64,000 nt of DNA from Zancudomyces culisetae HAW-14-8 (taxonomy: Eukaryota > Fungi > Kickxellomycota). The stretch covers positions 1,116,001 through 1,180,000 of the forward strand of contig JBNJNM010000013.1 in the NCBI GenBank assembly GCA_052426225.1, read 5' to 3'. Both the position numbers and the translations under genes were made by a program. Positions 3,136 through 30,962 of the stretch are shown here, piece by piece; within the stretch, counting starts at the first letter, position 1; each line of letters starts with the position of its first letter. Under the pieces are notes generated by a model, which was given only the letters and a program-made list of their open reading frames with translations, was not told the DNA's origin and did not search any database.

Positions 3136-4476
3136 TCAGTTTCTTTCATAGTGATAACCCAATCTCAACATTTGTGCTTCAAATATGTTCTCACAGAACA
3201 TGTAATCAACACCCAACTCGAAAAAGTGGTACAACTCCTCGCGTTTATTGCTTGGACAAAATGAATCGCGGTCTGTGTCCCTGGCAAAGTTAATGCCTCT
3301 TTTAATCTTTTCAAACATGGTGCTTCTTTTCTGTACAGCAACGCTCGAGCTTTTACCTTTATCTTGCTGACAAATTAGCCCATTCGCTTGCTTTGAATCA
3401 TAGTGTGTGTATGTTGAAACTGCAATACCGTTGGCGTGACAGGCGCTGACTATTCCCTTTGGTGTTAGAAATCCTCCCATAGCTTTGATCTCATCTTCAT
3501 TATATTTATTTCCCTTTGATTTGAAGTACTTCTCTGGTCCAGATACGAGGAAATTCTTGTTGAATCCAAAGACATCTACAACACCTGCAAGCTGTTGAAT
3601 TCCCTTTGGTGTGTATAAATGAGGTGTATCCTGGTCAAGATATAATAGGGGGATGCTGGTGACTCCTTTTAGGTAGGTAATGGTATCGAGATCAAAAGAC
3701 TGGATTCCTGCTACCTTATTTTCATTTCTGAATTTTGGTTCTATATTGACAGCATAATCAAGAAGGTTCTTTCCATCAAAATTATCAAAAACATTTGGTG
3801 CTTTAAAACCTTCAGGTTGTTTTGTAACGTTATATCCATGCTTTTCGAATAGTCCCAACACTATTTTCTCAAAGTGTCTATCCACCTTTCCTGTTTTGTT
3901 TGCAATAATTTCGTTGAAAATCTCTGGTGATTTAAGCTCAGGAACCACCCCAAAGGACTTGTTATTGTGTATCATCTTTAGTCTTTCAATATCGACCAAG
4001 TATTCCTCAAAAGTTGGAATATGAAATACGTTGTTTAAATAATCAGTACATTGTTTACATGTTTTCTCTCTGACGTTGTAGAGCTGTTTTAGCTCTGCGT
4101 AGTCAAAGTCAAAAACATACCAGTCAGTCTCATTGAAGCTAGTATATTTCCCATCGTATACAAAGTGTCTCTTACGATCTGCAAACTGGGGTAGATCCTG
4201 GATGTTTGTGTTTCGGCCCAGGCCCAGATCGTGTACTATCACAACCACACCATCTCTGGTCATCACTAGATCTGGTTCAATATATTCTGCCCCCTCAAAA
4301 GCTGCCAATTCATAGCTGCCAAGTGTGTGTTCAGGCATGTAAGCCTTCTCTCCCCTGTGCCCCAGGATTATGCTTGGCTTTCCATCAAGTGTGTTCCACT
4401 GGCATCCAGAGTGACTTTTACCACTAACTGCCTGTAGGCTGTACAGGGCTGCTAACACTCCCAAATTTAGATACAT
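3136..4476 (-). CDS. Glycerophosphodiester phosphodiesterase (GDPD/GlpQ-like), probably secreted
   Basis: Motifs ILGHRGEKAYMPEHTLGSY, EYIEPDLVMTRDG..VHD, PTFEEY, PELKSP, IQSFD and GVDYMF; hydrophobic N-terminal signal peptide MYLNLGVLAALYSLQAVSG. Confidence 0.92.
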   Translation of the reverse strand: MYLNLGVLAALYSLQAVSGKSHSGCQWNTLDGKPSIILGHRGEKAYMPEHTLGSYELAAFEGAEYIEPDLVMTRDGVVVIVHDLGLGRNTNIQDLPQFADRKRHFVYDGKYTSFNETDWYVFDFDYAELKQLYNVREKTCKQCTDYLNNVFHIPTFEEYLVDIERLKMIHNNKSFGVVPELKSPEIFNEIIANKTGKVDRHFEKIVLGLFEKHGYNVTKQPEGFKAPNVFDNFDGKNLLDYAVNIEPKFRNENKVAGIQSFDLDTITYLKGVTSIPLLYLDQDTPHLYTPKGIQQLAGVVDVFGFNKNFLVSGPEKYFKSKGNKYNEDEIKAMGGFLTPKGIVSACHANGIAVSTYTHYDSKQANGLICQQDKGKSSSVAVQKRSTMFEKIKRGINFARDTDRDSFCPSNKREELYHFFELGVDYMFCENIFEAQMLRLGYHYERN

Positions 4477-17932: not shown

Positions 17933-19405
17933 TTTTCCAACTTGGTTGCCAAATTATTCTGGCGCATCCCCTGTTGATATCGCTTTATATACTTCCTATA
18001 ATTGAAAAGGGTCGCTGATAACATTAAACTTAAGCTATTTCTATAACTTGATGTCCTTTGTCTCACAGGATGTATTTTTTTTCGAAGTATGACCCCGATT
18101 AAAATGTTGAAGTGCTTGGTGCCAGTGAAAAGTTGTATATCTTCTTATGTATTGTAAAGTAGCCTGAAACAAAAAATAATAATAGATGCTAAACCTGAAA
18201 GATATCAATGCTTTATATTAGAAAAGTGATACACTAATTATCAAAAAAGTTTATATTATTTCTAACTCCGAAACCCACTTTATATTGATATAATGGAAGG
18301 GATGTTATATAACTAAGTTCTTCGCACTCACTAAATCTAGTCCAGTTGAATTTAAGAATACAAAGATCGCTGGCCATTTTGCTTAGTTTTTACACAAAAG
18401 CATTGGGTTCTTTTTACTGCGAGTTTGTTTTCTCGTCGGCTCTAGACACATTTTAATAAAAGTCAGTTGCCAATATTTGAAAATGGCTAGTAACAATGAT
18501 AATCCGAAACTAGTTGAAAATAGTCAACCCGGATATCACTCGCACTTTGTAGAATAGAAATCTGCTACAGGATGGCAGCCTGCTTCACACATTTCCTACG
18601 CATATATATTTTCTTTATCTTTCTCTTATTTTTTTTTTTGCAGAGCGCAAATGTCATTTGGCGACTTTAATATTTTATATGTTATTTCCAGCTTTGCAAT
18701 ACAATATAATCTGCAAATTGCTTCAGAGGGGTGAGAAAAAAACAGCAGTAATCCAATCCTTCATAAAGAAAAAAAAAACTAGGTTCATATTCACTATTGG
18801 TATTTTTTGGGTCTTACTTTAAGAGCATTGGGTACAATCCAAATGATTAATGTAGGGCACACCTTAACTGAGCAAAATTTCAACTGAATGATACAAGCCC
18901 CATACAATAAAAATGAAAGCACCAAAATACTCTACGCTCTGTTAGCTTAGGCTTAAGCCACTGCAGAGGTTAGTAAAGTCAAAACCAAAACCAAAACCAA
19001 AACCGTACCGAATCTTATAGTGCTTGACAAGTATTAGTGCTAATGACCTCAACAGTCCCAAACGATGATACAGCTGCTATCACCTCAAACACAAAGCTGA
19101 TGGGATGGTTCAAACGCTCAGGTTTTTGGACTGTTCTCTGTGCTTTATTTCGGCATCACATTATATAACATTGGGTCTAGATGGTTAGGGAACCTAGCTT
19201 CCTTTAATTATATCCCCCCAAACAAAACGGATATTATTACCCAATTAAATTGTCTTGTTTTTTTTCCATAGAGCTTTTCATTTATTTGCATTTTTATTCT
19301 CAGTCATTGGCCAGCTAGCTTTTTGGCGAAAAAAAATTTTTTTTACATCAAAACAAGCAGAAGGGGATAGGGATGGTAAGGCATGCATTTGGTACTTTTT
19401 TTTTG

Positions 19406-19431
19406 TGAAAATTTTTTTTTTAGCTATAAAA
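19406..19431 (+). promoter_or_regulatory. RRPE-like TGAAAATTTTT (19406-19416) and TATA-like TATAAAA (19425-19431) upstream of the MRP RNA; a second A8T8 tract at 19329-19344
   Basis: Direct motif match. Function is inferred only, and chance occurrence in AT-rich DNA is plausible. Confidence 0.35.
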
Positions 19432-19466
19432 GCAAAATAAAAAGAAAATAATCAGGTTTCTAAATA

Positions 19467-19854
19467 AGAGACAACACGAAGATTCGCTTTATACATCGGG
19501 GTTTTACTTATGGGGTCATCCTGCCTATGGTGGGGTGTCTCTGTATCGACCCTGGGGAAAGTCCCCGGACAAGTTTGGCAGAAAGTGCCAGCCGTAAAGG
19601 TAAACATGCAGGTCTACTTCGATTTCAACCGACAATTCGTTCTCTTTTGGCGTAGAAGTGTGGATGCTTCTGTTTCTGAAAATGGAATTTGAGTGTGTTT
19701 GCACCGAGCCTGGTTCGTTTTGGTTAAGGTTGGGATGTTGTGGAATGCCAATTGTCATAGCAAAGTTATGCGAAATTAGTGCTTTGATAGATAGAGAGTT
19801 TCTCTCTGTTTCTCACGCTCTAACCTCAACGGGGCTTACTCTTGTGTTGTTTCT
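19467..19854 (+). ncRNA. NME1: RNase MRP RNA
   Basis: CR-I GGGGAAAGTCCCCGG (19554-19568) and CR-V CAACGGGGCTTA (19827-19838) form the P4 pseudoknot. MRP-diagnostic P8 hairpin TGGCA-GAAAG-TGCCA (19576-19590, GARAR loop). P1 AGAGACAACACGAAGA (19467-19482) pairs with TCTTGTGTTGTTTCT (19840-19854). P2 TTCGC/GCGAA follows CR-IV-like AAAGTTA. Confidence 0.93.
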
Positions 19855-19990
19855 ACAAACCTAACATACTTTTGGATTTTCAGAAGAGAGGATTATCTTT
19901 CTGTTTGACAGAAAGAACCAATTCTAAGAAAAGTCAGTAAACTGTAAGTACCTATTATCTTTATTTGAGCTTTTATTTTTTTTAAAAATT

Positions 19991-20066
19991 TGCGATATGA
20001 TGTCAGAATTTCTTCACCCGAATTTAATGTGGAACATTTTTCTTGAGCTTTTTAACCCTGATCGCA
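19991..20066 (+). ncRNA. snR47: Intronic box C/D snoRNA, snR47/U36 (SNORD36) orthologue, double guide
   Basis: Terminal stem TGCGA/TCGCA; C ATGATGT 19997, D' CCGA 20018, C' ATGTGGA 20027, D CTGA 20058. Guide GAATTTCTTCAC is antisense to LSU GUGAAGAAAUUC (yeast Am2220); guide GAGCTTTTTAAC is antisense to SSU GUUAAAAAGCUC (yeast Am619). Both D+5 positions pair with A. Confidence 0.9.
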
Positions 20067-20245
20067 TGCCATTTTTATTTATTGTTTTATAATTTTATGA
20101 ATCATCTTGGTTCTTGTTCACATAGCTAACGTTTGAATTTCAACTACTATTTAGTGTGCGTTTGACAAACCTTAAGGCTCTGGCTTTCTTGGAGAATCTT
20201 TTCTGGAAATTCTTTTCTTTTCACTGTAAGGTGTTATAAGAAGCG

Positions 20246-20328
20246 GATAGAATGATGAAGATAAATCAAAGGCTTAATATATGAAACCGTAGATTTGGCA
20301 TTTGCCATGTCTCGTTACTGAAAATATC
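20246..20328 (+). ncRNA. Intronic box C/D snoRNA, family unassigned
   Basis: Perfect C box ATGATGA (20252-20258), D' ATGA (20281), D CTGA (20318-20321) and short GATA/TATC stem, within intron 20226-20389. Candidate guides CAAAGGCTTAAT and GTCTCGTTA. Confidence 0.72.
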
Positions 20329-20558
20329 TCTTGATTTGTTGCTGACTTTTCGCTTTTGTACTTGAAATTTGGTGTTTCAACTATTCCAGAGCTACTGGCT
20401 TACGGTTGGTAAACATCGAATGTTAAGCTACAGCAGTGTATTTCTTATTTTTTTGTATAATAAATCTGACTTTGTGGACTTGCAATTTCCAACTATCAGC
20501 TTTTTGGAGGTAATTATATGCTACTTTATGTACCATTTATTCAATAGGCATTTTTTGC

Positions 20559-20658
20559 TGTATTATTGATGACAACATTTGTTTTCCAGGATAGCAAGAT
20601 AGCTCTCTATCCGATGAGTGAAGCAAATACCTTCTAAGAAGCCCTGAACTTTTATACA
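20559..20658 (+). ncRNA. Intronic box C/D snoRNA, U61/SNORD61-like
   Basis: C TTGATGA (20566-20572), internal hairpin GGATAG/CTATCC, D CTGA (20644-20647), TGTAT/ATACA stem. Guide CCTTCTAAGAAG is antisense to SSU CUUCUUAGAGGG (one G-U); D+5 pairs with U (human Um1442 region). Confidence 0.8.
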
Positions 20659-20804
20659 TGTTTATTATTGACGGTTCTCTTTTTTAAAGAAAAGATTTAC
20701 TAATCTTTCTTTCTTTCTATACAGGGTAGATGACGCAAGGCTCTAGTAGTCGTTGGCTTCAAGCAAAGTAACAAGGTAATTACAATTCACATTATTTGTT
20801 AACC

Positions 20805-20909
20805 TGCCACTAGATGATGTTTTTTAGTTTAATATCTGTCAATCCACTGAAGACATCTGTTGTCTATCATGTTGATTCGTTTTTATACGACCTGTTCTGA
20901 ATTATAGCA
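20805..20909 (+). ncRNA. Intronic box C/D snoRNA, snoR14/SNORD110-like
   Basis: C ATGATGT (20814), D' CTGA (20847), C' ATGTTGA (20869), D CTGA (20897). D' guide ATCTGTCAATCC is a 12-nt antisense match to SSU GGAUUGACAGAU, with D'+5 pairing U. D guide GACCTGTT is antisense to SSU AACAGGUC. Confidence 0.82.
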
Positions 20910-21438
20910 CCATTGTTTACTTAATGAGTTTATATTTCAACGCTTTTCTAATCTAAATTCATTATTTTTTCCATGTAGGTATTTCTCGCTTCCCTTTTAT
21001 TATAAAAATATTGACATTTATATGAAAAATCTTAGTGTTAAATAAACAAAATATCAGCCATACTTTCTTTTCATGCCCTTCGTTTTTTTTTGACAATTAT
21101 AAGCTCACTAAATTTTGATTAGTTTTGCTAATTCACCTGAAACGGCCGAAAGTTAGCCTAAAGCTAGGAAAAAAAAGGCTGGTGACTCATCATCGGCTTC
21201 GATGGCTTTTTCCCAGAAAATCATAATGGCTATGCCACATATATGAGGCTCGTTGTGACACAGAGCAGTCAACTCATAACTAATTTACTGGTCTGTGAAT
21301 GTGTTTTTTACATCATATCTATTTATGCGGTTTTACAAGAAAAAGAAAAGGTAGTAGAAAAAAAATGAGTGATAGTAAGTGTGGTGTACCACACTACAAC
21401 AATGCCATATTTTCATCTGTCAGCTTAGACAGAGCTGT

Positions 21439-22143
21439 TTACTCCAATTCCAACCATTCTACAAGTTCCTTTTTCAAGTATGAGTTCCATTGGGTTTCGT
21501 AAATGGCATATTCGTAACTATCTATGTAGTGATTGTCCATAACGAGCACCTCTGACAATACATACTCAAGAGGAACCTTTGCAACCTTCTCCAGCCATTT
21601 TCGCATTGGTATGTTATCTTTAGTAGTTTTAAACACAACTTTATGAAGCTTCAATACATCAAAGCTCGTCTGTAGACAGTGGTAGATTGCCTCGCTCCCA
21701 TATCCACCCTTCCACATTCTATGATCTAAAATTATCCCAACTTCAGCATTTGCCGATCTTAGGTCGATATCTTTGAGGCCACAATGTCCGATTATTACAA
21801 AATCCTCGTCAATACCATTTGTCCCGGCTTTTAGTATCTCTTCTTTGCTGAATTTGTCTACAAGGCTACCTAGATTCTTCACGGTAATTGCAATTGCAAA
21901 AGACAAATCTTCACCAAGTGCGTTTAGTCTTTCTCTATTTTTTCGTCTTTCTACGACTTCCTCGTGTGACCAACCTTCTGGTGCCTTAGCCATAAACATT
22001 AAATACTTCATTGTTTCAGGACAACTTAGTATCCGCTGTACTGATGCATCTGTTGTCTCGTTGAACGGCACGAGCGCTAACCTCTTTCCGTGAATTGTGT
22101 ATGAGGTTGGCACAGTTATTTCGTCGTTGGGATAGTTTATCAT
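21439..22143 (-). CDS. GNAT N-acetyltransferase, RimJ/RimL (Acetyltransf_3) type
   Basis: IIGHCGLKDIDLRSANAEVGIILDHRMWKGGYGSEA (acetyl-CoA motif A), LKLHKVVF..DNIPMRKWLEK, YIDSYEYAI..TQW. Confidence 0.88.
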   Translation of the reverse strand: MINYPNDEITVPTSYTIHGKRLALVPFNETTDASVQRILSCPETMKYLMFMAKAPEGWSHEEVVERRKNRERLNALGEDLSFAIAITVKNLGSLVDKFSKEEILKAGTNGIDEDFVIIGHCGLKDIDLRSANAEVGIILDHRMWKGGYGSEAIYHCLQTSFDVLKLHKVVFKTTKDNIPMRKWLEKVAKVPLEYVLSEVLVMDNHYIDSYEYAIYETQWNSYLKKELVEWLELE

Positions 22144-25703: not shown

Positions 25704-26702
25704 CAGCTTGGTTTTGGTTTTGGTTTTGCTTTTACCAGTCTGGAAAATACCTAGAAACAAAAGAAGAAAGAAAAAAATTTTTTTTTTGCAAACCTCAATG
25801 GTTTTTCAAAGTTTGATGACTTTGGAGGACGGGATAGAGAGAGAGAGAGAGAGAGAGAAAGTGGGGATGAGAGAGGAATGAAGGAAGAAAGGAAGAGAGC
25901 AAGTGGTATCTGTGAGTTTAAAGCATTTGGGTGATGCAGATTACAAGAGTATATATTTACTATATAGACTCATGTTAAATTAAATTTTGAATTATATCTA
26001 GTGCTTTTTGTTAAAATAGACAACCAGGTAGAGTAGATGTGGTGGTGTGGTGGTGTGGGGGGGGGGGTGAAGGGGGTGAAGGGAGAGACTAGAAAATAAT
26101 AATGTTTACTTGATATGTATTTATATTCAACATAATAATCATAATAATAAAAAACAAATGAGCAAATGAATTTGTTGTACAGTCAACCAAGCAGCCAGCC
26201 AGCCAGCCAGCCGCTTTACAAATTTTTGTTAGGTATATTTTCATGAATTGATGGAATTTTGATCCAGTTTGAAATCAGAAAAAAAAATTTTTTTTTTCCA
26301 GCTAACTATATTTTTGTTAATTGCCTAAAACGAATAAAAGTCTGGTAAAATTATATCGGAAGTTGGCGGTGGTGGTGGGGGGGTGGAGAGTAGTGGGAAG
26401 GGAGAGGGAGAGGGAGTAGTTACGACTATTTTAATTTTAATCATTGTAGGTAAATTTGTGGTAACATAAATGGGAAAAGTAAAAAAAAAAAATTTTTTTT
26501 TTTTTTGCAAAGTTCAAATGTTAAATCGAAAATAAATGAAAAATGAAATAATATACAAAAGTAATAACACTAGGCCACAATAAATCTAGTAAATATAGAA
26601 TCGAGACAAGTCAAAACAAAACAATATAATTCAGAAAAAAAATACAAGAAAATAAAATCAAAATAAAATAAAAGCGAGTAAATAGTGTGTATGCTTGTAA
26701 AT

Positions 26703-29700
26703 ATGGTACACGAATTGAAAACAGAAATAAGGAATATAAAGAACCAAATAACTTTGGCACAGACAAATGTTAAGAAAAGAGCAGAAGTGCTGATAGCCGT
26801 TGAGGAGTCGATAAGAGAGCAACAGAGAAATGCAGGCGAAAGTATAGAAGGAGAAATAAACGCTTCAAGCTATGTAGCAGCATTATTGGCACTGTTGGAT
26901 CAGCAGCAAAAAAACGACATAGAAATACAGGAAGGCAATGTTGAAGCAAACGAGGTGAAAGAGGCAATAGTGTATCTGATTGGAAGGGTAATACAGTATG
27001 TGCCAGAAAAGGTGTTACGCAGCCAATATTTTAGGATTATGGGTATTTTGAGTAATTCAGTAGATTTGAGCAGTGCTACTGAGACTGAATTGGTATCAAT
27101 AATCTCGAGCATGGAAGCTTTGTTAAAGGGTCTGGACAGAAATGGGTGGCAACAGAGTTTCTCGTATAAAGGGTTGCAGGCAATTTTAATAATGTGCTTG
27201 GATTCAAGAGAAGAAGTACACAAAAGAGGAATAGAAGCGGTAAAAGTAATTATGCAGGAGGGATCAAAAGCAAAAGGCAAAAACACAAGTCAATCAAAAT
27301 TGCAAAGTCAACACCCTATGGCAGTTGATAGTATAACTTTTGCAATGGAGATGCTAGAGAATGGACTTCAACAGCAAGATGGAGCGGGTGGTGTTGATAT
27401 AAGACAAGTCAAGTTAGTTTCAGCACTTTGTAGTGCTGTTCCAAAAGAAAAACTGGCATATATGGTATGGAGATTGATGGAGATAGCGACAATCAAAAAT
27501 AAAGAACAACAGCAACAACAACAAAAGAAGCAAAGAGTTGGTGAAAATGGTGTTCATAATGGAGATGCAAGTATTGAAGATGATGAAAATGAAGAGTTGG
27601 AAGAATTGGAAAAGATAGTAGAAGGGCTTATTGAAGGAATCCATCAATTGTTTAAGGCAGCAGTAGAACTAAAAGAAATAAACAAAGTAAAAGAACTTGT
27701 AGAGCAGTTGAGAAAGCAAAAGCCAGGAGCTAATAACAGCAGTGGTGGAGGAAATAGTAATGAAGGGGTGGGAGCGGGTGTAGGCAAGGCGATAGATGCA
27801 GAGATATGGATACGAGTGATGGAGGTGGTGGTTGGAGTAGAATACATCGAGGGTGTAGAGAGTATGGAGTATTTGGGATCAGAGACGGCTGTTTCAGTGT
27901 TAGATGGAGCGCAAGTGTTGAATATATTTAGGGATATGAAGGGGTATTTAGAAACAGGTACTCAACGAACCAAAAAGGCAGCTGCAAAGGGGATGAGGAG
28001 AATAATTCGAGAAAAGATAGTTACCAACTATAGCGGCAATAGCAGCACGAATTTGCAAGCCATGATGACAATGGAACAGGAGATTGGAAAAGAACTGGAA
28101 GAAGCGATGGGATACCAATATAGAAACGAATGGAAGGAAGTGTTCAAGCTAATTAGAGAATACATGTATGTAGGACAGCCATTGTTGCCACAGACAGAGC
28201 CACAAGGGGTTAGTAATGAAGAAGTTAAATCACAAAAGAAAGGATTAAAGATGGTCAAGCTTAGTGAACAAAAGCAAAAAATAATTGAACATGTGGCAGC
28301 GATGCGCGGAGATCTAAACCAGCCGTTTAATGTTCAAAGCGAAGTTGATAACATGTTGACAGCGAGTGTTAGAGCACTGGGACCACGGCAGTTCTTGCAG
28401 GTTCTTCCGTTGAATCTCGAGGCAATATTGACAAAGGATTACAGCACTAGTCGAACATGGGAGTTGCCATTGATGAAGGGAGGTATACAAGGAGCGGAAA
28501 TTGGACACTTTATAAATGAAATGATACCAAGAGCAGACATGATGGGGCAGCAGAGCCGGGAGTTGTTGGTGTTGTCGTTATCGAGTGGACAGGATTCGGG
28601 TAATAACAGCAATGGTAAAGCAATACAGGCAAAAGTGCTCAAAACAATAGAAATGCAGATTTGGGATTTGTTTGTGGAATATACTAGTAACAACCCAGTG
28701 GATGTAGAACAGAGTGTTACTAATGAGTTTATGCAGGAAATGATTAGACGTATTGTAGCAACACCTCAATCTATTGACAACAACAACAACAACAACAACA
28801 TTATTAATGGTAGTGACAATCAATCCATAGCTATGGCTGACGAGGAAACACGTATCAAAGAAATGATTGTTAGTGGATTGAGAGGGCTGGCCAAGTATAC
28901 AAAGACACTGATGCAGTCACAATCCGACAATCTGGGTACTACCAGTAACTGTGTAAATGTGGTGGTACAGACAGCTCCTCAATTGATTTCAATTCTGTTT
29001 AATGAGTTGAATAGCAATGATTCCAATAATAATAATAATAATAATAGTGGTATAAACACCAGAACAATAAATGCAGAGTTGATTAAGGAGACGGCTCGTG
29101 AGTATTTGGGACTTTGTAGCGAGCAGCAAGTTGTAGAATTGTACGGACAGTTGGATTCCATGGTTAACAACAGCGTTTCCAGTATAACCAACGGTGATAA
29201 AGATAGCAACGTTGATCAGGTATTGGTGATACTTGAGGTGTTGATTATTATAGCACCGTATTTCAATTCGGAAATTGCTCAACAAATATTGAACAAGTAC
29301 CTGGTTCTACTAAGTAACTCTGATAGTAGTAGCAGCAGCAATGATTTGTTTGATAATCAAGAGTTAAAAAGAAAGGTTTACAAACTAATAACCGAAGTTA
29401 TTGGCAAGCTGGAAAACCAACCTTTAGTCATCCATGAGGTTTTGAAATCAGTTGTTATTTCCAAAAGTAATGATGCAAGCAATAATGCCTCCAGGAGTGG
29501 AGGGGAAGTATCCTTGGGGTTATCTGTGAATATCAAGGATCGTATAAAGCTGATTACAAAGTTGATTGAAATGCAAATCCATGCTTATTCATCATTCCAG
29601 AATTTGGAGATTAGTACTCAAATGAATAGTGAAGCGGAAACTGTAACCAAACTGCTTATTGGAGAAACAGTTGTATACACCAAAAACATTAACGAAAAAA

Positions 29701-30962
29701 TCCGGGTTTCAAGTCTTAAACTCTTGGAAAATATTGCTAAATTTACTATTCTTCGATTCAATATTGTAAATGGTAGTGGTAATGGAGGACTAAAATGGGT
29801 AATTGATGTAGTGGCTGCAGGTTTAGCTTCTCAATCTGCTGTAATGATATCCGCTACAATCAATAGCATTACACACTTGTTGTTACATTATTACAACGCC
29901 GAAACCAGCGAAAATAACAATAGTGTTGAAGGACTGGCGTATATCAACGAAATCTTTGATACAGTCATCTTGTTCATTACAAAAGATGTTTCTTCAAACA
30001 AGAAAAAGGACGGTAGTGGAAATGTCAAGAATAAAAAGAATGGAAATAAATCCGTTGGCAATGGTAATGGTAATGGTAATTTTGATGCTAAGAACTCGCA
30101 TGAAATCATAAATAAATCAATCCTCAACTTTTTCAAGACTTACTCATCACTTATCAAGACTCAAATTGAAAAGAACCGGCTGATGGTAATGTTGGAATTT
30201 ATAAAAACTCATAATTATGGTAAAGGTAACAAGTACCTGTTGGTAAAATTTATCAAGATCTTTGGTAACGACTACATTTCACCACTCTTTATCGCCCAAA
30301 ATCAGAACCAACCAGGTTCAAATACCCAGGAACTGTTGTCTCACTATAGACGGTTTTATAATAGTGTGGTCAGATTGATGAATCCAAACACCAACAAGGA
30401 TGCCGATACTCTTGAACTCGATAACCTTACTGGTGGTAATAAAAATGGCAAAAAAGAAAAAAGAGATAAAAGAAGAAATGCTCAACAAAACAAACAAATG
30501 CTTCTTGACGACTATATCTCAAATAACACCAATTCCAACACCAACAATGATAATGGTATTGATGATGATGGTGATGGTGGTATGGCTATGGACTTCCTTT
30601 CCAAATCTGCCTTTTCTCGTTTTACAACCTTTAAAAATAACTCAAATAAAGGTTTGTTTGGCAATGACGATGATGGAATCAACATTGATTTTAAAAATGG
30701 CAAACTTGTCGTTCCTAATGAACAACCACCAACAGATAACAATACCGGAAACCAAAATGACACCAAAAAACCATTTTCCATGTCAATGTCAACGTCAATG
30801 TCACATTCAACAAATAAACAACAAAAAGGTGTTGCTAATAGAATAAAAGATGCAAAGAAAAAGAAAAGCGATACACTAAAGAAAAATGCACGGTTCCAAC
30901 CATATGCATACATTCCGCTCTCTGGAAAACCAAACAAAAACAGAAAACTAGTCAAAAACTAG
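26703..30962 (+). CDS. RRP12: Ribosomal RNA-processing protein 12 (HEAT/NUC173)
   Basis: LIAVEESIREQ..SYVAALLALL N-terminus; NUC173-like GPRQFLQVLPLNL..SRTWELPLMK..AEIGHF..EMIP..QIWDLF; VAAGLASQSAVMISATI; C-terminal QPYAYIPL. Start ATG at 26703 (or 26691); many poly-N/Q insertions. Confidence 0.88.
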   Translation: MVHELKTEIRNIKNQITLAQTNVKKRAEVLIAVEESIREQQRNAGESIEGEINASSYVAALLALLDQQQKNDIEIQEGNVEANEVKEAIVYLIGRVIQYVPEKVLRSQYFRIMGILSNSVDLSSATETELVSIISSMEALLKGLDRNGWQQSFSYKGLQAILIMCLDSREEVHKRGIEAVKVIMQEGSKAKGKNTSQSKLQSQHPMAVDSITFAMEMLENGLQQQDGAGGVDIRQVKLVSALCSAVPKEKLAYMVWRLMEIATIKNKEQQQQQQKKQRVGENGVHNGDASIEDDENEELEELEKIVEGLIEGIHQLFKAAVELKEINKVKELVEQLRKQKPGANNSSGGGNSNEGVGAGVGKAIDAEIWIRVMEVVVGVEYIEGVESMEYLGSETAVSVLDGAQVLNIFRDMKGYLETGTQRTKKAAAKGMRRIIREKIVTNYSGNSSTNLQAMMTMEQEIGKELEEAMGYQYRNEWKEVFKLIREYMYVGQPLLPQTEPQGVSNEEVKSQKKGLKMVKLSEQKQKIIEHVAAMRGDLNQPFNVQSEVDNMLTASVRALGPRQFLQVLPLNLEAILTKDYSTSRTWELPLMKGGIQGAEIGHFINEMIPRADMMGQQSRELLVLSLSSGQDSGNNSNGKAIQAKVLKTIEMQIWDLFVEYTSNNPVDVEQSVTNEFMQEMIRRIVATPQSIDNNNNNNNIINGSDNQSIAMADEETRIKEMIVSGLRGLAKYTKTLMQSQSDNLGTTSNCVNVVVQTAPQLISILFNELNSNDSNNNNNNNSGINTRTINAELIKETAREYLGLCSEQQVVELYGQLDSMVNNSVSSITNGDKDSNVDQVLVILEVLIIIAPYFNSEIAQQILNKYLVLLSNSDSSSSSNDLFDNQELKRKVYKLITEVIGKLENQPLVIHEVLKSVVISKSNDASNNASRSGGEVSLGLSVNIKDRIKLITKLIEMQIHAYSSFQNLEISTQMNSEAETVTKLLIGETVVYTKNINEKIRVSSLKLLENIAKFTILRFNIVNGSGNGGLKWVIDVVAAGLASQSAVMISATINSITHLLLHYYNAETSENNNSVEGLAYINEIFDTVILFITKDVSSNKKKDGSGNVKNKKNGNKSVGNGNGNGNFDAKNSHEIINKSILNFFKTYSSLIKTQIEKNRLMVMLEFIKTHNYGKGNKYLLVKFIKIFGNDYISPLFIAQNQNQPGSNTQELLSHYRRFYNSVVRLMNPNTNKDADTLELDNLTGGNKNGKKEKRDKRRNAQQNKQMLLDDYISNNTNSNTNNDNGIDDDGDGGMAMDFLSKSAFSRFTTFKNNSNKGLFGNDDDGINIDFKNGKLVVPNEQPPTDNNTGNQNDTKKPFSMSMSTSMSHSTNKQQKGVANRIKDAKKKKSDTLKKNARFQPYAYIPLSGKPNKNRKLVKN

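Follow-up and report, generated by a model that had tools for sequence, protein, structure and literature searches.

An RNase MRP RNA predicted to head a non-coding snoRNA host gene in the early-diverging fungus Zancudomyces culisetae

The RNase MRP RNA of Zancudomyces culisetae, an insect-gut zoopagomycete fungus from an early-diverging lineage, appears to form the head of a non-coding host gene with four intronic C/D snoRNAs. The predicted gene lies on the forward strand of the window, the 64,000-nucleotide stretch of contig JBNJNM010000013.1 (assembly GCA_052426225.1) in which positions are given here. A putative host promoter stands just upstream of the MRP RNA, and the RNA is also framed by intron signals that exceed chance. 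In the explanation that we favour, on balance neither more nor less probable than not, RNA polymerase II would start at the MRP 5′ end and the MRP RNA would be exon 1 of a polycistron, an order seen in the yeast pair NME1-snR66.

Results

An RNase MRP RNA with one match in the genome

Rfam and folding place the RNase MRP RNA at positions 19467–19854, 388 nt from P1 to P1. The family RF00030 matches 19469–19851 over its full model (1–266) with 92.1 bits, against a cut-off of 50, and in a scan of the whole genome (27.1 Mb, 25 contigs) this locus gave its only match above the cut-off. Folding pairs 19467 with 19854 in helix P1 (z −3.5), and the P1 closing helix, the P4 strands and the P8 GARAR loop are all present in the Rfam alignment. 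A first-pass annotation made from the sequence had stated that no T5 run lies inside the RNA; this is correct, but there are three T4 runs, at 19502, 19645 and 19718. The earliest run of five or more T on the 3′ side is a T8 at 19976, ahead of the first snoRNA. An older annotation carries a 77-aa gene antisense to the MRP RNA (minus strand, 19525–19758; L009 12383–12616), which is probably spurious.

A predicted host of four C/D snoRNAs

Four candidate introns follow on the same strand, each with a single snoRNA. The first of them (19944–20154; donor GTAAGT, branch A 20129; motif scan) hosts snR47/SNORD36 (19992–20066; Rfam 60.3 bits), whose guides of 12–13 nt match LSU A2626 and SSU A621 of the organism's own rRNA. 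The next (20226–20389; donor GTAAGG), with its acceptor at 20389 or, given a later branch point, at 20499, hosts a C/D-like snoRNA without a clear family (20248–20328; C box 20252, D box 20318; weak Rfam matches only), in which 20267–20278 are a 12-nt complement to LSU 3792–3803, at the very 3′ end of this 3817-nt rRNA. A U61-like C/D snoRNA (20561–20651; Rfam 22.4 bits, under the cut-off) sits in the intron at 20510–20724 (donor GTAATT, branch A 20703; motif scan), and its D guide pairs over 13 nt, with one G-U, with the organism's own SSU U1455. Finally, the intron at 20776–20978 (donor GTAATT, branch A 20951; motif scan) hosts a snoR14-like C/D snoRNA (20809–20903; Rfam 24.7 bits, also under the cut-off), with a perfect 12-nt D′ guide for SSU U1289 of the same rRNA. 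Perfect 12-nt guides occur at four of the 552 box-like sites of the window, and three of these four are within the host snoRNAs. Guides are thus confirmed on the organism's own rRNA for three of the four snoRNAs, and the fourth is uncertain. The RNAs, the guides, the motifs and the rarity of those motifs are what we observe directly at this locus.

Because the snoRNAs are each framed by splice signals and the longest ATG frame of the host exon model is 19 aa, the locus is best described as a non-coding host with one snoRNA per intron. A coding host starting at the ATG at 19373 was considered and rejected, as it yields 19 aa only. Between the acceptor-like signal downstream of the MRP RNA and the first snoRNA intron lies a 60-nt non-coding segment (19884–19943), which would be exon 2 if the MRP RNA is intronic and the tail of exon 1 if transcription starts at the promoter.

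Some details of the host leave room for variants. In 20390–20509, the acceptors at 20389 and 20499 together with a GTAAAC at 20409 permit micro-exons and an intron without an RNA. At 20976–20984, a donor-like GTATTT directly follows the last acceptor and is a possible recursive splice site. Further downstream, folding of 21170–21330 gives hairpins that match nothing in Rfam.

Splice signals around the MRP RNA

The first-pass annotation had proposed that the MRP RNA is encoded within an intron, and motif scans, Rfam and folding find the donor, the TATA box, the RNA, the branch point and the acceptor all where it had placed them. Its intron start, ATG|GTAAGG (19376–19381), lies between the two A/T tracts of the putative promoter, at TATA −49, and its predicted pairing with U1 (−8.5 kcal/mol) is the strongest at this locus. 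Past the RNA, the branch-point motif CTAAC (19861–19865) puts the branch A at 19864, which is 10 nt beyond the end of P1, as that annotation had also said. The first AG thereafter belongs to the acceptor-like TTTTCAG (19877–19883) and ends at 19883, 19 nt on, giving a candidate intron (19376–19883) of 508 nt.

Chance rates were taken from about 113 kb of the non-coding DNA of Z. culisetae itself. By the strict consensus, a donor 20–150 nt upstream is found for 0.038 of positions, CTAAC with a YAG no more than 30 nt downstream for 0.0045, and the two jointly for 0.0002; by a loose consensus, the rates are 0.28 for the donor, 0.024 for the branch point and acceptor, and 0.006 for both. No branch point/acceptor-type signal was found past the 3′ end of any of five snRNA/U3 genes of this genome, and no donor-like word within 150 nt before the TATA at any of six reference promoters. 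No signal at the MRP RNA is an assembly error, because the donor, TATA, tracts, branch point and acceptor are all unchanged in an older assembly that is about 99.3% identical here (about 0.7% of sites differ).

The geometry of the candidate intron is unusual. In the intronic snoRNAs of the same genome, the distance to the branch A is mostly 51–86 nt, with one case of 24, compared with 10 nt for the MRP RNA. Additionally, folding predicts an extra 6-bp stem between 19454–19459 and 19857–19862 (pair probabilities 0.79–0.94). This stem could form only in transcripts started upstream and would mask the 5′ bases of the branch motif. For the U2 snRNP to load, some 20–25 nt of RNA ahead of the branch site must be free, and a folded MRP RNA would therefore be expected to hinder splicing; the intron route would demand that the MRP RNA fold after splicing.

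A putative host-type promoter upstream of the MRP RNA

We defined a host promoter pattern, TATAWAW with A4+T4+ tracts within 150 nt upstream, on the U14 host and U3, and then found the host-like gene L035 by this pattern. Two or more tracts with TATAWAW are present at the U14 host, L035, the snR61 host and the snR77-76-74-73 host, and one tract with TATAWAW at EFB1 (the U18 host) and U3. Three loci found by Rfam afterwards, the snR61 host, the snR77-76-74-73 host and EFB1, provide independent tests, and all three carry the pattern. Among 451 background non-coding TATAs, the two-tract form occurs at one, which is L035 itself.

Upstream of the MRP RNA, a TATA box (TATAAAA, 19425–19431) lies 42 nt before P1 and is preceded by two RRPE-like A-tract/T-tract elements, at 19327–19344 (TATA −96) and 19407–19421 (TATA −17). 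The TATA of the organism's own U1, U2, U3 and U6 lies 37–39 nt ahead of the 5′ end (U5 has no strict match), and this spacing predicts a start at 19462–19466, TATA +37 to +41. A TATA at MRP-like spacing would, taken alone, have a chance of 0.017 in the roughly 113 kb of non-coding DNA. In the simplest reading, the TATA at 19425 would be the host promoter and transcription would begin at about 19462–19466, 1–5 bases before P1. As the promoter seems to start right at the MRP RNA, a first exon is the more likely role for this RNA than an intron.

In the 250 nt that precede the donor at 19376, the only TATAWAW is at 19162 and has no tracts; we rejected it as the host promoter, given the absence of tracts and its chance-level occurrence. 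None of nine intronic snoRNAs of this genome has a TATA within 60 nt before its C box. The MRP locus lacks both a B box and the CCCATAA element that stands 69–89 nt upstream of the 5′ ends of the organism's own U1, U2, U3, U5 and U6. The occurrence of CCCATAA at these five genes (L012, L014, L016, L017 and L018) is an observation in its own right, a shared upstream element that resembles the animal PSE, in a fungus. U2 and U3 also have in common a short motif just ahead of +1.

Neighbourhood and other RNA loci

The cluster is adjoined by a gene for a GNAT protein (21439–22143), and an identical protein is present in assembly GCA_001969505.1. Searching with this protein for the locus in a related species returned a paralogue in the same species only. 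The pre-rRNA processing gene RRP12 (26685–30962) follows the cluster at a distance of about 6 kb; a search with it led to distant fungi, among which Martensiomyces shows no synteny at its locus and no match to MRP there. One NIPA exon, used for the same purpose, found no match, and searches of this genome with four snoRNA families and SNORD33 were likewise negative.

Several other RNA loci came to light. The U14 host (L013 1040–1960) has three snoRNA introns, with a snR107/snR190-like RNA, U14 and a SNORD49-like RNA. As in yeast, U24 and U18 are both intronic (L039 and L042), the former within a WD-repeat gene and the latter within an EF1-beta-like one. From the look of their sequences, we take the U24 host to resemble ASC1/RACK1 and the U18 host to resemble EF1-beta. 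RNase P RNA gave two Rfam matches about 0.9 kb apart, which suggests an RNA near 1.2 kb (L006 2719–1501, minus strand); there are two copies, at about 137–138 kb of contig C19 and about 2466 kb of contig C21, with a TATA-like word some 40 nt before the 5′ match.

Discussion

MRP RNA as a proposed first exon

The explanation that we favour can be spelled out as follows. A Pol II promoter, made up of the two A/T tracts and the TATA at 19425, would initiate at about 19462–19466, and since transcription would thus start at the 5′ end of P1, the MRP RNA would be the first exon. The transcript would continue across the four introns, each freeing one C/D snoRNA via splicing and debranching, and the MRP 3′ end would arise when the exon tail is cut or trimmed back to the protein-protected P1. 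The donor at 19376, inside the promoter, would be transcribed rarely or never, and the branch point and acceptor past the MRP RNA would be a product of chance, a relic of a former intronic state or a signal in minor use. For the host of the MRP RNA, we infer the start site, the polymerase, the splicing and the 3′ trimming alike.

In favour of a first exon, the four introns with snoRNAs require a promoter, and the TATA at 19425 provides the only match to the pattern. On the other side, this explanation accounts neither for the branch point and acceptor (chance 0.0045–0.024) nor for the donor (0.04–0.28), and it draws on a promoter pattern from few loci, with host start sites inferred throughout. 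A non-coding RNA in exon 1 found no support at either of the two other hosts checked. At one of these, the snR77-76-74-73 host (L041 2275–2565, minus strand), the first exon is about 290 nt long, rather G+C-rich and includes a P8-like hairpin; it folds no better than shuffled sequences and has no Rfam match.

Rival readings

The weights that we place on the readings are estimates from the chance rates combined with judgement on priors. The promoter and the splice signals are each far beyond chance on their own, and because these two rare patterns overlap, we keep in consideration, as possible if unlikely, that both are used: most transcripts would start at the TATA, with the MRP RNA as exon 1, and some would start upstream of 19376, with the MRP RNA trimmed from the lariat of a spliced 508-nt intron; each set of signals would then persist because its route is in use. 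The strength of the U1 pairing at 19376 and the predicted stem that is restricted to upstream-started RNA both fit such dual use, which would however have to maintain two arrangements for which we found no published MRP example, and the promoter pattern is absent upstream of the donor. Clearly less probable is that the intron is the sole source, with a TATA-less promoter upstream of 19376, a short exon 1, and all MRP RNA left by exonucleases that trim the debranched intron at its 5′ and 3′ ends. The close framing of the RNA by donor, branch point and acceptor (joint chance 0.0002–0.006), the placement of the other four host RNAs one per intron, and precedents in insect RNase P RNA (PMC4287351, PMC6797745) and the MRP RNA of the red alga Cyanidioschyzon merolae are in its favour. 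It would nevertheless make the TATA incidental and the promoter pattern at −42 a matter of chance (one of 451 TATAs; 0.017 for a TATA alone at that place), deprive the host of the promoter found at the other four hosts, and leave only 10 nt from P1 to the branch A where intronic snoRNAs of this genome mostly have 51–86 (24 in one). Of the intron claim in the first-pass annotation, therefore, the signals above chance and the host with one snoRNA per intron stand, and against it are the promoter inside the candidate intron and the want of one upstream of the donor; the alternative that it mentioned, a transcript driven from 19425, is better supported than the intron alone by calibration within this genome. 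Taken together, it is a tentative proposition, somewhat short of even, that a non-coding snoRNA host releases at least part of the MRP RNA from one of its introns after splicing, possibly with an intron-internal promoter, such that the RNA is made both ways, in a state between the two modes.

Two further readings are very improbable. The MRP gene could be a stand-alone Pol III or separately terminated unit, with the snoRNA introns transcribed from elsewhere. Its lack of internal T5 and the T8 at 19976, which could terminate before snR47, would suit this, as would the MRP genes of animals and Ostreococcus, which are read as Pol III genes. The first-pass annotation had left Pol III open on the strength of the T runs, but the sequence makes it unlikely: the CCCATAA of the organism's own U1, U2, U3, U5 and U6 and the B box are both missing, the promoter pattern is common to the protein gene EFB1, and no promoter would remain for the snoRNA introns. 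We also give very little credence to use of the acceptor at 19883 with another donor in RNA started at the TATA, either AAG|GTAAAC at 19600 or AG|GTTTCT at 19456. Such a donor would account for promoter and acceptor jointly, and both sites pair with the organism's own U1 about as strongly as donors 4 and 5 do (−6.8, −6.9 kcal/mol). Sites this weak are common, however, and 19456, which has no G at +5, precedes the predicted start. Were 19600, inside the MRP RNA, to be used, unassembled MRP RNA would be destroyed, and use of 19456 would make the first exon tiny.

Comparison with known systems

Non-coding polycistronic snoRNA hosts are well known in fungi, and the part of PMC5033589 covered here describes clusters I–V of Candida, which the present locus resembles as a non-coding transcript with short exons and one C/D snoRNA per intron. 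According to the same part of that work, many Candida host transcripts combine exonic and intronic RNAs. In contrast to the clusters described there, the Z. culisetae host would be headed by MRP RNA, and snR47, the U61-like and snoR14-like RNAs and the unassigned RNA are outside the clusters that it names. In Candida, snR66 follows MRP by about 150–170 nt and both are scored as non-genic exon (PMC5033589 S1 Table). NME1 and snR66 are neighbours in Saccharomyces cerevisiae as well, where NME1 is transcribed by Pol II (PMC7277114) and its 3′ end is trimmed by Rex3 (PMC12129344). As in the NME1-snR66 pair of Saccharomyces and Candida, the MRP RNA of Z. culisetae is followed directly, on its own strand, by a C/D snoRNA; unlike that pair, where MRP and its partner snR66 are each exonic, four other snoRNAs here lie in introns and splice signals frame the MRP RNA.

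An intron-hosted MRP RNA is not new as such, because a 2025 preprint reports one in C. merolae (bioRxiv 10.1101/2025.12.01.691491). The first-pass annotation had cited the intronic RNase P RNA of insects as precedent, which holds, and the algal report adds a precedent for MRP RNA itself. There, as in the candidate intron, the MRP RNA has a 5′ splice site on one side and a branch point on the other, and long reads show it as one of 23 stable RNAs that lie in annotated introns; in Z. culisetae, by contrast, the host would be non-coding, the intron is a candidate and a putative promoter lies inside it. The RNase P RNA of insects and crustaceans is intronic and offers the model for release, by splicing, debranching and trimming by Rat1/Xrn2 and the exosome (PMC4287351, PMC6797745). 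It has no promoter signals of its own, whereas the MRP gene of Z. culisetae has them, and insect MRP remains a Pol III gene although insect RNase P RNA is intronic. Neither a fungal intronic MRP RNA nor an MRP-headed cluster of intronic snoRNAs was found in a literature search with most subscription journals outside its coverage, and an intron-released fungal MRP RNA, if real, would be the first fungal case in the literature searched.

Meaning

Neither the first-exon nor the intron reading amounts to a new kind of system. In any Pol II reading, the RNA of a pre-rRNA endonuclease and four guides of rRNA methylation would share one promoter, and rRNA cleavage would therefore be tied to rRNA modification. 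If the MRP RNA is indeed exon 1, the yeast order of MRP followed by snoRNA extends to an early-diverging fungus, and the question arises of how the MRP 3′ end is freed from the spliced host RNA. Should the intron be in use, a fungal case would join C. merolae, and Z. culisetae, which can be cultured, would allow a direct test of a switch between promoter and intron as the source of P/MRP RNA.
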